Of a DNA stretch of 64,000 nucleotides, positions 39,031 to 43,343 are shown in pieces. This DNA is from Schizochytrium sp. TIO01 (taxonomy: Eukaryota > Protista > Bigyra: Labyrinthulomycetes). Within the stretch, counting starts at the first letter, position 1. Every line of letters starts with the position of its first letter. The stretch covers positions 2,542,024 to 2,606,023 of the forward strand of contig SMSO01000007.1 of the NCBI GenBank assembly GCA_004764695.1, in the 5' to 3' direction. The position numbers and the translations under genes were made by a program. Below the pieces are notes generated by a model. The model did no database searches. It saw only the letters and a list, made by a program, of their open reading frames with translations, and was not told the DNA's origin.

Positions 39031-42000
39031 ATGTCGCACGACCCAGATGTTGTCTATGCCCTTGAAAAGCTTCAGAATGGTGCTACAATTTTAGAGTAAG
39101 TTAACACGCTTGCTTGCTTGCTTGCTTGCTTGCTTGCTTGCTTGCTTGCTTGCTTGCTTGCTTGCTTGCTTGCTTGCTTGCTTGCTTGCTTGCTTGCTTG
39201 CTTGCTTGCTTGCTTGCTTGCTTGCTTGCTTGCTTGCTTGCTTGCTTGCTTGCTTGCTTGCTTGCTTGCTTGCTTGCTTGCTTGCTTTATTTGCACGGTG
39301 TTGCTTTTGTCGCTCTTGTTTTGCAAGTTTATGCAATCTCTTGTTTGTTTGTTCGGTTTGTTTGATGGATGGATGAGTTGTCTGTTTGAGTGAGTATACA
39401 TCCATCGAACAAAGAGCAAAATGACACCACAACAAAGATAAATGCTGAAAGCCAACCTAGATCACTCACGTTCATGCATGCATCCAATGCAATATAATGT
39501 ATTGGTTGCCATCATTGAATCAAATCGACAGTCTTCCGTGCAACAATATCGGCGACGAGGGCGCCAAGGCAGTGGCTGCGGCGCTGAAAGAGAACCGGTC
39601 GCTGACATCACTCAAGTAAGTTGTCTACGCAACACCGCAGCTCGTGGACTTGTTTGTACATGATGCTTGGTTTGTTGTTTGGTGGGTGGGTCGGTGTTGT
39701 TTTGGCAAGCAAGTTTATGCAATCGCTTGTTTGTTTGATGGATGGATGAGTTGTCTGTTTGAGTGAGTACACATCCATCGAACAAAGAGCAAAATGACAA
39801 CACAACAAAGATAAATGCTGAAAGCCAACCTAGATCACTCACGTCCATGCATGCATGCGTGCATCTATTGTAATATGTAACGTGTAATGTATTGCTTGCC
39901 ATCATTGAATCAAATCGACAGTCTTGCGTGCAACAATATCGGCGACGAGGGCGCCAAGGCAGTGGCTGCGGCGCTGAAAGAGAACCGGTCGCTGACATCA
40001 CTCAAGTAAGTTGTCTACGCAACACCGCAGCTCGTGGACTTGTTTGTACATGATGCTTGGTTTGTTGTTTGGTGGGTGGGTCGGTGTTGTTTTGGCAAGC
40101 AAGTTTATGCAATCGCTTGTTTGTTTGATGGATGGATGAGTTGTCTGTTTGAGTGAGTACACATCCATCGAACAAAGAGCAAAATGACAACACAACAAAG
40201 ATAAATGCTGAAAGCCAACCTAGATCACTCACGTCCATGCATGCATGCGTGCATCTATTGTAATATGTAACGTGTAATGTATTGCTTGCCATCATTGAAT
40301 CAAATCGACAGTCTTCCGTGCAACAATATCGGCTCAGAGGGCGGCAAGGCAGTGGGTGCGGCGCTGAAAGAGAACCGGTCGCTGACATCACTCAAGTAAG
40401 TTGTCTACGCAACACCGCAGCTCGTGGACTTGTTTGTACATGATGCTTGGTTTGTTGTTTGGTGGGTGGGTCGGTGTTGTTTTGCAAGTTTATGCAATCG
40501 CTTGTTTGTTTGATGGATGGATGGGTTGTCTGTTTGAGTGAGTATGCATCCATCGAACAAAGAGCAAAATGACAACACAACAAAGATAAATGGTGAAAGC
40601 TAACCTAGATCACTCACGTCCATGCATGCATGCGTGCATCTATTGTAATATGTAATGTGTAATGTATTGCTTGCCATCATTCAATCAAATCCACAGTCTT
40701 TCGTGGAACCATATCGGCGACGAGGGCGCCAAGGCAGTGGCTGCGGCGCTGAAAGAGAACCGGTCGCTGACATCACTATCGTAAGTTGTCTAAGCAATAG
40801 CTCGTGCACTGGTTTGTGCATGATGCTTGGTTTGTTGTTTGGTGGGTGGGTGGGTGTTGTTTTGCAAGTTTATGCAATCTCTTGTTTGTTTGATGGATAG
40901 ATGAGTTGTCTGTTCGAGTGAGTATACATCCATCGAACAAAGAGCAAAATGACAACACAACAAAGATAAATGGTGAAAGCCAACCTAGATCACTCACGTC
41001 CATGCATGCATGCATGCATCTATTGTAATATGTAACGTGTAATGTATTGCTTGCCATCATTCAATCAAATCGACAGTCTTGAAAGCAACGATATCGGCTC
41101 AGAGGGCGGCAAGGCAGTGGGTGCGGCTCTGAAAGAGAACCGGTCGCTGACATCACTTGAGTAAGTTGTCTACGCAACACCGCAGCTCGTGGACTTGTTT
41201 GTACATGATGGTTGGGTTGTTGTTTGGTGGGTGGGTTGGTGTTGTTTTGCAAGTTTATGCAATCGCTTGTTTGTTTGATAGATGGATGGGTTGTCTGTTT
41301 GAGTGAGTATGCATCCATCGAACAAAGAGCAAAATGACAACACAACAAAGATAAATGCTGAAAGCCAACCTAGATCACTCACCTCCATGCATGCATGCGT
41401 GCATCTATTGTAATATGTAACGTGTAATGTATTGCTTGCCATCATTCAATCAAATCGACAGTCTTACGTGGAACCGCATCGGCGACGAGGGCGGCAAGGC
41501 AGTGGCTGCGGCGCTGAAAGAGAATCAGTCGCTGACATCACTCAGGTAAGTTGTCTACGCAACACCGCAGCTTGTGAACTTGTTTTGTGCATGATGCTTG
41601 GTTTGTTGTTTGGTGGGTGGGTCGGTGTTGTTTTGCAAGTTTATGCAATCGCTTGTTTGTTTGTTTGATTGTTTGGTTGATGGATGGATGGATGGATGGG
41701 TTGTCTGTTTGAGTGAGTATACATCCATCGAACAAAGAGCAAAATGACAACACAACAAAGATAAATGCTGAAAGCCAACCTAGATCACTCACGTCCATGC
41801 ATGCATGCGTGCATCTATTGTAATATGTAACGTGTAATGTATTGCTTGCCATCATTGAATCATATCAACAGTCTTAGTAACAACAAAATCGGCTCAGAGG
41901 GCGGCAAGGCAGTGGGTGCGGCGCTGAAAGAGAACCGGTCGCTGACATCACTCAAGTAAGTTGTCTACGCAACACCGCAGCTCGTGGACTTGTTTGTACA

Positions 42001-43343
42001 TGATGCTTGGTTTGTTGTTTGGTGGGTGGGTCGGTGTTGTTTTGCAAGTTTATGCAATCGCTTGTTTGTTTGATGGATGGATGAGTTGTCTGTTTGAGTG
42101 AGTATACATCCATCGAACAAAGAGCAAAATGACAACACAACAAAGATAAATGGTGAAAGCTAACCTAGATCACTCACGTCCATGCATGCATGCGTGCATC
42201 TATTGTAATATGTAACGTGTAATGTATTGCTTGCCATCATTGAATCATATCAACAGTCTTAGTAACAACAAAATCGGCTCACAGGGCGCCAAGGCAGTGG
42301 CTGCGGCGCTGAAAGAGAACCGGTCGCTGAGATCACTCAAGTAAGTTGTCTACGCAACACCGCAGCTCGTGGACTTGTTTGTACATGATGCTTGGTTTGT
42401 TGTTTGGTGGGTGGGTCGGTGTTGTTTTGCAAGTTTATGCAATCGCTTGTTTGTTTGATGGATGGATGGGTTGTCTGTTTGAGTGAGTATGCATCCATCG
42501 AACAAAGAGCAAAATGACAACACAACAAAGATAAATGGTGAAAGCTAACCTAGATCACTCACGTCCATGCATGCATGCGTGCATCTATTGTAATATGTAA
42601 TGTGTAATGTATTGCTTGCCATCATTCAATCAAATCCACAGTCTTTCGTGGAACCATATCGGCGACGAGGGCGCCAAGGCAGTGGCTGCGGCGCTGAAAG
42701 AGAACCGGTCGCTGACATCACTATCGTAAGTTGTCTAAGCAATAGCTCGTGTACTGGTTTGTGCATGAGACTTGGTTGGTTGGTTGTGTCGTGGGTTGTC
42801 TACTGTTTTGTTTTGCCGATATTTTTCTTCTCGTCATTGCAAGTTTGTTGTGGAATTTTTTGTTTGGTTGATTGTGGATGTAACAAAGAGCATGGTAATA
42901 TCAAAGAATAAATGAAGCAGTACTGGCAATACTGTGGGTGCCTTTTGATGACGTGAAAATTTTAACTGACGAACGGAGTTGATGGCATTTGGTTTTTACT
43001 GATTTCTAGAATTGACCAGTTCACGGATGAAATTTGTAAGGAGCTCGAATTGAATAGGCACGTTTATTCTGCAAAGGCAAGAAGGAAAATGCTTGAACAG
43101 ATATCTCGTGAGCTTCGTTGTATACATGTTGTGAACGATGCACTTTCTCTGCCGTTTTCAGTGAAGCGTAGTCTTCTTACACAAACCTGGCCTGTTAACA
43201 GCTCGAGTGAGCTGAGTTCGAAAGAGGATTATCTTTCTGCGCAGAAAGTAGAGCTTGATGGGCTGGAAGCTGCAAACGTTGCCTTTCGTGGAGCATTGGG
43301 ATGTCTAGGCCCTTATATTTTGAATAAAAATAGTTCTAAATAG
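39031..43343 (+). CDS. 384-aa RNI/NLRC3-type leucine-rich-repeat protein, 11 exons: 39031-39095; nine 84-nt LRR exons at 39532-39615, 39922-40005, 40312-40395, 40697-40780, 41077-41160, 41462-41545, 41872-41955, 42257-42340, 42642-42725; last exon 43010-43343
   Basis: All ten introns begin GTAAGT, end CAG (last one TAG) and are phase 2. The spliced CDS is 1155 nt with no internal stop. Each exon encodes xLxxNxIG(D/S)EG(A/G)KAV(A/G)AALKENRSLTSL. The last exon is in frame with the 43050-43343 ORF. Confidence 0.92.
39108..39287 (+). repeat. (GCTT)45 microsatellite in intron 1 of the LRR gene
   Basis: Perfect tetranucleotide run of 180 nt. Confidence 0.97.
39300..42770 (+). repeat. Tandem array of nine 380-410 bp intron+exon units
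   Basis: Spacing between exon starts is 390, 390, 385, 380, 385, 410, 385, 385; intron sequences are near-identical. Confidence 0.97.

Follow-up and report, generated by a model that had tools for sequence, protein, structure and literature searches.

A 385-bp repeat array within thraustochytrid rDNA as a probable spliced gene of single-exon leucine-rich repeats with hypervariable surface codons

Is a homogenised repeat array between the rRNA genes of a thraustochytrid chromosome end a spacer or a gene? Arrays of ~385-bp units in ~9 copies have been described in Aurantiochytrium limacinum MYA-1381 as "Group 0" LORE-TEARS, which lie between 5S genes transcribed away from the telomere and 18S-28S genes transcribed toward it, and were published as non-coding (Collier et al., bioRxiv 10.1101/2023.06.15.545109). 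The 64,000-nucleotide stretch of Schizochytrium sp. TIO01 DNA analysed here (the window) contains such an array, with a period of 385 bp and 8.4 copies according to TRF, in the same position between the 5S gene and the 18S-28S cluster near a telomere. By contrast with the published description, each unit is here one leucine-rich repeat (LRR) exon and one intron of a spliced gene. The segment 39031–43343 is probably an intact gene, transcribed and spliced, with a 384-residue LRR protein as its product, and belongs to a family that evolves by homogenisation of its units combined with hypervariable codons. The original prediction considered such a gene undescribed in thraustochytrids. The array itself had been published; however, the LRR reading was not found in the literature searched, in which no paper links Aurantiochytrium with leucine-rich repeats.

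Organisation of the gene and its repeat units

The LRR gene and the rRNA genes on its two sides are organised as follows.

38452–38570, minus strand: 5S rRNA gene (Rfam), divergent, 460 bp upstream of the LRR gene ATG
39031–39095, plus strand: exon 1; ATG, 21 codons and 2 nt; donor GTAAGT at 39096
39096–39531, plus strand: intron 1, 436 nt, with a perfect (GCTT)45 microsatellite at 39108–39287
39495–42742, plus strand: tandem array of 385–390-bp units, each an 84-nt exon and a ~300-nt intron (TRF, unit identities); equals "Group 0 LORE-TEARS"
39532–39615, plus strand: LRR exon 1 of 9; hypervariable signature D-P-C-N-D; Pfam LRR_6 E=1.2e-4 for the exon alone
39922–40005, plus strand: LRR exon 2; unit one base different from unit 1; exon start unique in the genome
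40312–40395, plus strand: LRR exon 3; CAG, 84 nt, GTAAGT unit
40697–40780, plus strand: LRR exon 4; equal to exon 9, within an exact 420-bp duplicate; Pfam LRR_6 27.6 bits
41077–41160, plus strand: LRR exon 5; CAG, 84 nt, GTAAGT unit; spliced joint 40780>41077
41462–41545, plus strand: LRR exon 6; CAG, 84 nt, GTAAGT unit
41872–41955, plus strand: LRR exon 7; CAG, 84 nt, GTAAGT unit
42257–42340, plus strand: LRR exon 8; CAG, 84 nt, GTAAGT unit
42642–42725, plus strand: LRR exon 9; same sequence as LRR exon 4
43010–43343, plus strand: last exon; acceptor ttctag before A at 43010; 110-residue helical C-terminal domain; stop TAG at 43341–43343
47077–52603, plus strand: 18S-5.8S-28S rDNA (Rfam), beginning 3.7 kb past the LRR gene stop

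A mechanical search for 84 nt enclosed by CAG and GTAAGT finds exactly nine units, the exons listed above, and each exon encodes one 28-residue LRR of the ribonuclease-inhibitor (RI) type in phase 2-2. The 65-nt first exon leaves two nucleotides of a codon; therefore, all introns of the gene are in phase 2. Joined to the nine cassettes and the 334-nt last exon, it gives an open frame of 384 residues that ends at the TAG, as expected from the proposal that flanking exons splice in frame onto a series of one-repeat exons. The base composition predicts ~15 stop codons in 9 × 28 random codons, whereas the cassette frame of the gene is open. The introns, which had been described as near-identical, share 86–100% identity with each other, and the TRF array as a whole has 92% matches. 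The product of exon 1 is a conserved N-terminal cap with the end ...LEKLQNGATIL. In a six-frame search of the window, a profile hidden Markov model of the cassette detected no orphan or antisense cassettes beyond the nine exons. Antisense open reading frames of 129 codons that span whole units were rejected as coding, with one stop per unit and a frame that is lost in 385-bp units; long antisense frames occur in the array because its minus strand is T-poor. An AATAAA hexamer lies directly ahead of the TAG stop in the last exon.

Transcripts and the gene family in rDNA units

A spliced transcript of the gene had been anticipated; RNA-like contigs contain GT..AG joints at the exact exon borders, and MMETSP transcripts also contain a splice junction. 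The mapped public runs consist of contigs with a predicted RNA nature, and the part of the locus beside (GCTT)45 was used. The joints include 39615>39922, in two contigs, and 40780>41077, in four contigs (run X16), together with 39615>41077 and 39615>41872. The exon-exon junction pattern has no match in the genome, and in runs X16 and X19 the depth of exon bins exceeds that of intron bins 100–1000-fold. The only run recorded as RNA (X20) contributed one intronic contig, at 41978–42209. Run X15, labelled "probably DNA", also contains joints. Most of the joints can be assigned equally well to paralogues; the start of gene exon 3 (LRR exon 2) is unique to the locus. Four of the nine junction strings from RNA, which are short, matched genomic neighbours in 21 family loci, and the remaining strings probably come from genes outside those loci. 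Open reading frames from MMETSP transcripts contain the C-terminal domain in four variants. In one of them, P0006, an LRR exon runs directly into the last exon, so that the terminal splice is observed via paralogues. A search for homologues of P0006 found three short MMETSP open reading frames and no transcript frame with multiple LRRs.

The gene is not a singleton. A genome-wide search of the kind suggested by the original prediction gives 754 exact matches to the cassette-donor sequence, compared with none for the reversed control. The first and last exons, taken to be unique, are so within the window; however, each occurs at least 40 times in the genome, and C-terminal exons of the family type number more than 75. 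The LRR gene is thus one of roughly 75–90 family genes with at least 754 cassettes. Of these, 21 were examined, comprising the window gene and 20 paralogue loci. All 21 retain the ATG, a 65-nt exon 1 with a GTAAGT donor, and open frames, with 7–20 cassettes each. The cassette exons of the 20 paralogues have the same 84-nt length and 2-2 phase, and intron 1 of every paralogue includes a (GCTT)n microsatellite of 7 to 132 units.

The position of the gene next to subtelomeric rDNA is borne out by the 5S and 18S-28S genes and by TTAGG repeats at 63542–64000 of the window. The ~3.7-kb spacing from an upstream last exon to the 18S gene is repeated at about 17 other scored rDNA units. In Aurantiochytrium limacinum, many family genes occupy the interval from 5S to 18S within subtelomeric rDNA units. 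It is unusual for the rDNA intergenic spacers of many chromosome ends to contain protein-coding genes, presumably transcribed by Pol II.

The array lies in a repetitive region of a long-read assembly, and rDNA units on contig C6 are arranged head-to-head at 1.12–1.20 Mb, which may represent joined chromosome ends. The array could thus have been collapsed or mis-expanded, and the neat gene model would be unreal. This is next to negligible as an explanation, because parts of the stretch occur in 20 runs from 11 studies, the architecture recurs at the 20 other loci with differing cassette numbers and sequences, and the published assembly has the same arrays of ~9 × 385 bp.

Hypervariable codons in homogenised units

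The cassettes combine homogenisation with variability that is confined to five codons each. These codons correspond to the x positions of the LxLxxNxIGx β-strand and loop. Entropy is 2.1–3.5 bits at the junction codon and at amino acids 2, 3, 5, and 8, and at most 1.07 bits elsewhere. Nucleotide diversity in the window is 0.50 at the 15 hypervariable sites, compared with 0.027 in introns and 0.04 in the framework, and family-wide it is 0.547 at hypervariable sites versus 0.107. The window gene and its closest paralogue differ at 37 of 135 hypervariable sites but at 41 of 2680 intron sites (Fisher P=5e-30). The peaks of entropy and diversity coincide with residues of the predicted concave face, which is the kind of excess variation reported for Ectocarpus. 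Such a signature, with introns 97% homogenised and five surface codons per repeat near saturation, is exceptionally clean. The hypervariability of the predicted binding surface across the family makes the "non-coding" repeat look like a repertoire of recognition proteins.

Duplication and swapping of cassettes had been proposed as possible from the array structure, and footprints of duplication and conversion are seen within the gene. The segment 40387–40806 is an exact 420-bp duplicate of 42332–42751, 1945 bp away, and contains LRR exons 4 and 9, respectively. A single base separates unit 1 from unit 2 and changes hypervariable codon 2 from P to A. The window copy is low in cassette diversity, with LRR exons 1–3 near-identical and exon 4 equal to exon 9; it may be a young and little-selected member of the family.

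It is highly improbable that the 385-bp repeats are non-coding rDNA or telomere spacers of the LORE-TEARS type, serving chromosome-end or rDNA maintenance, in which the LRR frame is incidental or a decaying relic. The array does occupy a fixed place between 5S and 18S genes at most chromosome ends; its introns are G/T-rich with G-runs, and G-quadruplexes are reported (bioRxiv 10.1101/2023.06.15.545109); and it is homogenised like the other spacer repeats of the window, at 53601–55228 and 58533–62554. However, those other arrays contain no cassette match, and none of the 255 cassettes of the 21 genes has a stop. The near-saturated hypervariable codons contain 0 stops among 1275, whereas 81.5 ± 6.3 would be expected. 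Splice sites are kept at 754 cassettes, the ATG and the C-terminal exons are conserved, with invariant residues of the C-terminal domain retained at 37–41% identity, and spliced junctions are present in RNA-like contigs and MMETSP reading frames. The array may have a role at the DNA level alongside coding.

The preferred reading of a coding family leaves the source of the surface diversity to be considered. Germline mutation and selection could be replaced by an active mechanism, either targeted hypermutation or somatic or clonal recombination of cassettes, for which lamprey VLRs and trypanosome VSGs are models. Hypervariable sites are 18–19 times more diverged than flanking introns even in very recent duplicates, and the sole difference between units 1 and 2 falls in a hypervariable codon. 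Synonymous sites within the patch are raised as well, at Leu codon 27 and Asn codon 4, all cassettes are phase-compatible with ~300 bp of homology on their flanks, and the location is subtelomeric. By contrast, synonymous variation at amino acid 8 is low, D and S each using essentially a single codon, which fits the shuffling of a limited set of old alleles better than random hypermutation, and no mutator or recombinase gene is linked to the arrays here. The NG86 pN/pS ratio of the hypervariable codons is 1.29 with both terms near saturation, a value that does not separate selection from targeted mutation. Taken together, an active mechanism is very unlikely.

Protein architecture, related systems and possible function

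All nine repeats are 28 residues long and display the consensus LxxLxLxxNxIGxxG...L of RI-type LRRs. When searched exon by exon, single exons match Pfam LRR_6 (PF13516) with E=2.5e-6 to 3.6e-3; one of them, LRR exon 4, scores 27.6 bits, above the cut-off of 23.4. The 384-residue model consists of the cap, nine LRRs, and a 110-residue helical tail only. No signal peptide, hydrophobic segment or membrane segment was detected in it, in agreement with the cytosolic location suggested earlier, and the protein is, as judged from its sequence, soluble and intracellular. The central NACHT or NB-ARC NTPase domain that NLR/STAND receptors join to their LRRs is absent from the model, as is any other signalling domain.

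A lineage-specific helical module makes up the C-terminal domain. It has 13 invariant columns across subfamilies, and an AF2 model predicts three helices (pLDDT 70.8). Its close relatives, and those linked to LRRs, come from MMETSP and JGI, and its two weakest matches are unrelated coiled-coil proteins. The domain has no significant match in Pfam, no match to the PDB by sequence better than E=0.35, and none by fold (Foldseek). An SNF5-like identity (ESM Atlas clusters, 0.93) was rejected as noise, since recognition 1702 was below the mark and Pfam returned no SNF5.

The comparison with brown algae drawn in the original prediction is apt. The ROCO (LRR-GTPase) and NB-ARC-TPR genes of Ectocarpus, likewise from a stramenopile host, have one repeat per exon, equal exon lengths, symmetric phase, shuffling and duplication of cassettes, and variable residues on the concave LRR face (PMC3341825; PMC11378527). 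However, the Ectocarpus exons are 72 nt long and encode 24-residue plant-type LRRs, whereas here 84-nt exons encode 28-residue RI-type LRRs. The ROC-COR GTPase of the Ectocarpus ROCO proteins is missing, and the LRRs are fused to the small helical C-terminal domain only. Moreover, unlike in Ectocarpus, the introns are homogenised into a satellite and the genes are inside rDNA units. As far as the accessible account goes, Tetrahymena shares arrays of same-length LRR exons, phase-2 introns, unequal crossing-over, and subtelomere enrichment; however, its exons measure 90 bp rather than 84 bp, the lineage is unrelated, and that account mentions neither rDNA linkage nor five hypervariable codons that stand out sharply from homogenised units. 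Exon-per-repeat LRR arrays are a kind of gene already known from Ectocarpus and Tetrahymena, of which this is the third independent protist case; new are the embedding in rDNA and the re-reading of a published repeat. The re-reading turns a chromosome-end repeat class regarded as non-coding into a protein-coding one, and adds roughly 75–90 unannotated genes to a model thraustochytrid.

LRR exons of RNH1 and NLR genes usually comprise two repeats each. The family resembles RI/NLR-type proteins (PF13516) in the 28-residue repeat pattern, the LRR_6 matches, and the soluble intracellular nature of the product, but its exons hold one repeat each, it lacks NACHT and NB-ARC domains, and orthology to RNH1 is not detectable.

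Sequence comparison shows a family in which unequal crossing-over and gene conversion, acting both inside single arrays and from one chromosome end to another, keep the 385-bp units of exon plus intron near-identical. Five surface codons per repeat remain near saturated diversity, on the side of the repeat with which known LRR proteins bind their ligands. From one copy of the gene to the next, cassette number (7–20), order, and surface residues vary. Each paralogue may act inside the cell as a binding protein of individual specificity, and the family may form a repertoire, encoded in the germline, of proteins for recognition or inhibition. The likeliest targets would be non-self ligands that change fast, for example proteins of viruses or microbes, and the conserved C-terminal helices could provide a shared output or assembly function. 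A role in defence, which is suggested by the sequence features, has a little less than an even chance. Other surface functions of a real, expressed family include self/non-self or mating recognition and an adaptor or inhibitor of the cell's own fast-evolving proteins, possibly in the nucleolus. RI-type LRRs are general protein-binding modules, the gene lacks an output domain of the NB-ARC, NACHT, TIR or kinase type, and its C-terminal module is lineage-specific. However, known immune LRR families display this same combination of a large subtelomeric family with hypervariability focused on the concave face, and Aurantiochytrium is reported to carry persistent mirusviruses. A non-defence function is somewhat unlikely. 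Because Aurantiochytrium carries mirusviruses and is culturable and transformable, whether a protist has an antiviral LRR repertoire is directly testable there.

Since a hypervariable LRR gene is present within many rDNA units, the interchromosomal recombination that homogenises rDNA would copy, shuffle, and resize cassettes as well. The rDNA units at chromosome ends might then double as an engine of LRR diversification, fast enough for clonal lineages to differ in repertoire and for recognition in a virus-carrying protist to become quasi-adaptive, from the germline to the clone, which is quite unlikely. The zinc-finger minisatellite of PRDM9 also has 84-bp units encoding 28 residues, concerted evolution, and a few hypervariable contact residues per unit; however, it encodes DNA-binding zinc fingers in a single exon of a single gene and is only a mechanistic analogy. 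Lamprey VLRs, built from LRR cassettes, and subtelomeric trypanosome VSGs likewise provide repertoires in which surface specificity varies. VLR and VSG genes are assembled or switched somatically, whereas the LRR family described here is known from assembled sequence, and many types of junction are present in the RNA-like runs.

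Exon-per-repeat organization of the gene

The locus at positions 39031–43343 is an intact gene that encodes one leucine-rich repeat (LRR) per exon and belongs to a large family embedded in ribosomal DNA. Tandem Repeats Finder reports the region as a 385-bp array of 8.4 copies with 92% matches (39495–42742). Both reading of the sequence and a mechanical pattern search identified exactly nine units composed of CAG, 84 nucleotides, and GTAAGT. The features of the gene are:

39031–39095, forward strand: exon 1, 65 nt, with ATG at its start and GTAAGT directly after it
39108–39287: perfect (GCTT)45 microsatellite, upstream of the 385-bp array
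39532, 39922, 40312, 40697, 41077, 41462, 41872, 42257, and 42642, forward strand: starts of the nine 84-nt LRR exons (cassettes) from the pattern search
43010: acceptor of the last exon (ttctag/A), followed by an open frame to the stop codon TAG at 43341–43343

Because exon 1 is 65 nucleotides long, each junction cuts a codon after its second base (phase 2). The spliced frame is open to the TAG and predicts a product of 384 residues, whereas 9 × 28 random codons with the base composition of the array are expected to contain approximately 15 stops; therefore, the exon array is real and beyond chance. The pattern search and the open frame thus confirm the original prediction of nine 84-nt phase 2 exons with GTAAGT/CAG sites and flanking exons that splice in frame. 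The first and last exons had also been called unique, which holds within the window but not in the genome, where each has at least 40 scored copies. A (GCTT)n microsatellite is present in intron 1 of all family members examined (the window gene and the paralogue loci L001–L020), with n ranging from 7 to 132. This conserved, length-variable repeat next to exon 1 could affect expression.

Single LRR exons match the Pfam family LRR_6 (PF13516) with E-values of 2.5e-6 to 3.6e-3, one of them exceeding the gathering cut-off. The repeat length of 28 residues and the repeat pattern are of the ribonuclease-inhibitor type. The product lacks hydrophobic segments (maximum Kyte–Doolittle value 0.89) and its N-terminus is not signal-peptide-like, which suggests that it should be soluble and intracellular. 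The gene is without a signalling domain. The last exon encodes a 110-residue domain that is kept across subfamilies to 37–41% identity, with 13 invariant columns, and is predicted by AlphaFold2 to form three helices (pLDDT 70.8, pTM 0.33). Searches of Pfam, of the PDB by sequence, and with Foldseek gave nothing similar to this domain; a search of 1.84 billion representatives returned five matches, comprising three short MMETSP/JGI sequences and two coiled-coil proteins.

Gene family with five hypervariable codons per repeat

The gene is not a single copy. The genome contains 754 copies of the conserved exon end with its donor site, GCTGACATCACTNNNGTAAGT, and none of the reversed control. The 390-bp unit has at least 390 BLAST matches, located on many contig ends, and copies of the family-type C-terminal exon lie at more than 75 genomic places. 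Twenty paralogue loci were retrieved, which together with the window provide 21 loci and 255 cassettes. In each of the 20 paralogues, the ATG exon is 65 nt long, GTAAGT comes directly after it, and the number of 84-nt cassettes ranges from 7 to 20. Complete gene models of 327–693 residues could be built at 19 of the 21 loci. None of the 255 cassettes carries a stop codon, and an open frame was not a criterion of the cassette finder. The sole dead cassette seen lies between cassettes 15 and 16 of paralogue L018 and has the donor ATAAGT with its frame intact; its near-duplicate L012 keeps GTAAGT. The ATAAGT cassette is either an exon naturally switched off or a sequencing error.

Introns and exon framework are kept homogeneous in the family while five surface codons per repeat stay hypervariable and stop-free. 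Among the 255 cassettes, the Shannon entropy is 2.1–3.5 bits at the junction codon and residues 2, 3, 5, and 8, and at most 1.07 bits at the remaining 23 positions. The five positions are the x of L-x-L-x-x-N-x-I-G-x, which in known LRR proteins form the exposed, ligand-binding face of β-strands and loops. They are occupied by Ser, Gly, Asp, Asn, Tyr, Trp, Arg, Glu, Gln, and Lys, a set typical of binding surfaces. Nucleotide diversity in the window is 0.50 at the 15 hypervariable bases, 0.027 in introns, and 0.04 at framework exon sites; the corresponding values for the family are 0.547, 0.107, and 0.06–0.09. Position-matched cassettes of the window gene and its closest paralogue, L001, which has an identical first exon, differ at 37 of 135 hypervariable, 23 of 621 framework, and 41 of 2680 intron bases (Fisher's test of hypervariable versus intron divergence, P = 5e-30). 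Under relaxed constraint, sites could become at most as diverse as the introns beside them; the excess requires diversifying selection or targeted mutation. No stop occurs among the 1275 hypervariable codons, against 81.5 ± 6.3 expected from per-site shuffling; therefore, the variation has been filtered for coding. The NG86 pN/pS ratio is 0.65 at framework codons and 1.29 at hypervariable codons, where both terms are near saturation. Variation is likewise raised at the synonymous sites of Leu 27 and Asn 4, which lie inside the patch. From these sequence comparisons, the patch is read as an old island of divergence that would have been shielded from homogenization; targeted mutation is a possible alternative.

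The array in the window carries footprints of recombination. Units 1 and 2 (390 bp each) are one base apart, a difference that replaces Pro by Ala at hypervariable residue 2. LRR exons 4 and 9 are identical because an exact 420-bp tract at 40387–40806 is repeated at 42332–42751. The last four cassettes match those of the paralogues L001 and L003 in order, and the first five differ. The signature N-P-C-N-S is at position 3 in the window gene and at position 2 in L001. Intron diversity within arrays is 0.02–0.17, often under the family value. This pattern fits homogenization that would act mainly within arrays and also between chromosome ends.

The family proteins may be intracellular binders whose specificity differs by paralogue, and the paralogues together would constitute a recognition or inhibitor repertoire. 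A role in defence is plausible by analogy with the pattern common to immune LRR families and considering a host described as carrying persistent mirusviruses.

Transcription and splicing

Transcripts of the family are spliced. Parts of the window are covered by 20 public sequencing runs, which belong to 11 studies, and contigs of four runs were aligned to 39290–43500, that is, downstream of (GCTT)45 and of exon 1. In runs X16 and X19, contig sets whose RNA nature is a tool's guess, exon bins are 100–1000 times deeper than intron-only bins. GT..AG joints are positioned exactly on predicted borders (39615 to 39922, 40780 to 41077, 39615 to 41077, and 39615 to 41872), and loose contig ends run from an exon end directly into the TCTT... 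start of another cassette. The exon–exon junction pattern has no occurrence on either strand of the genome, in contrast to the abundant exon–donor pattern; therefore, the junction contigs cannot be genomic DNA of the strain. Run X15 is labelled 'probably DNA' but nevertheless carries joints.

The start of exon 3 (39922) is unique in the genome, and so the joint from 39615 to 39922 probably stems from the window locus. The exon 5 start is found at five genomic places. Most joints are attributable to the family rather than to a single locus, and a joint from exon skipping would look like one from a paralogue. The junction onto the last exon is seen via a paralogue whose last exon begins GATGGACC. 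Independent evidence comes from P0006, an open reading frame of an MMETSP transcript related to the C-terminal domain, which contains an intron tail and an LRR exon, continues as ...LTLL/EMSDGLTDE..., and then enters the C-terminal domain; the LRR exon and the C-terminal part, contiguous in P0006, are approximately 290 nucleotides apart in the genome. Four C-terminal variants are present among MMETSP open reading frames, which indicates that several paralogues are transcribed. X20, the sole run recorded as RNA, has one 232-nt contig (41978–42209). It is wholly intronic, lying between LRR exons 7 and 8, and may stem from pre-mRNA, transcription of the spacer, or DNA carry-over.

Ribosomal DNA setting and precedents

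The window (G000:C6:2542024-2606023) is the rightmost part of a 2.6-Mb contig, and the predicted adjacency of the gene to subtelomeric rDNA was verified by the surrounding features:

34551–34669 and 38452–38570, both reverse strand: 5S rRNA genes (Rfam)
47077–52603, forward strand: 18S, 5.8S, and 28S rRNA genes (Rfam)
53601–55228, 57492–58533, and 58533–62554: other spacer arrays, including 411 bp × 4, 407 bp × 2.6 (100% identity), and 371 bp × 10.9
63542–64000: TTAGG-type telomere repeats at the window end

The other spacer arrays contain no LRR cassette match, tRNA, or long open reading frame. An 18S probe found 106 candidate sites, and all 40 that were scored are approximately 100% identical. 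At approximately 17 scored units, as in the window, a family-type last exon ends 3.6–3.8 kb upstream of 18S on the same strand. A second subfamily, P0002-like and also with one exon per LRR, ends approximately 1.6 kb upstream of 18S at at least eight other units. It is found at L021 (G000:C31:5690076-5693414), L022, and approximately 18 further places, and its C-terminal domain is 37–42% identical. A third type, P0010-like, is located at G000:C35:19923-21561. The recurrent spacing to 18S shows that the LRR gene is a regular component of many rDNA units.

A repeat of approximately 385 bp × 9 between 5S and 18S has been named Group 0 LORE-TEARS in Aurantiochytrium limacinum MYA-1381 (bioRxiv 10.1101/2023.06.15.545109), and the layout and repeat of the window match it. 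In the literature searched, LORE-TEARS appears only in this assembly preprint, and no paper connects Aurantiochytrium to leucine-rich repeats. The proposed likeness to exon-per-repeat arrays of Ectocarpus was upheld: its ROCO genes have equal-length LRR exons in symmetric phase, although of 72 nucleotides instead of 84 (PMC3341825; PMC11378527). LRR arrays of Tetrahymena have 90-bp exons, one per repeat, with phase 2 introns as here, and subtelomeric enrichment. Therefore, this kind of gene is already known. The new features are the lineage and the ribonuclease-inhibitor-type 84-nt cassette, satellite-like intron homogenization beside a sharply delimited patch of five hypervariable codons, and the location inside many subtelomeric rDNA units; moreover, the coding array had been published as a non-coding spacer.

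Three further rDNA/LRR units are located in the interior of the contig (G000:C6, 1.12–1.20 Mb), two of them in head-to-head orientation (18S at 1161073, forward, and 1192420, reverse), and several contigs of the assembly are 7–9.7 Mb long. The interior units and long contigs may be chromosome ends joined in assembly. Between the two 5S genes, a 767-residue open frame (34937–37240, reverse strand) matches Pfam DUF6729 (E = 2.4e-9), and a 215-residue open frame (29717–30364, reverse strand) has a weak match to Pkinase_fungal (E = 9e-6), just above the cut-off.
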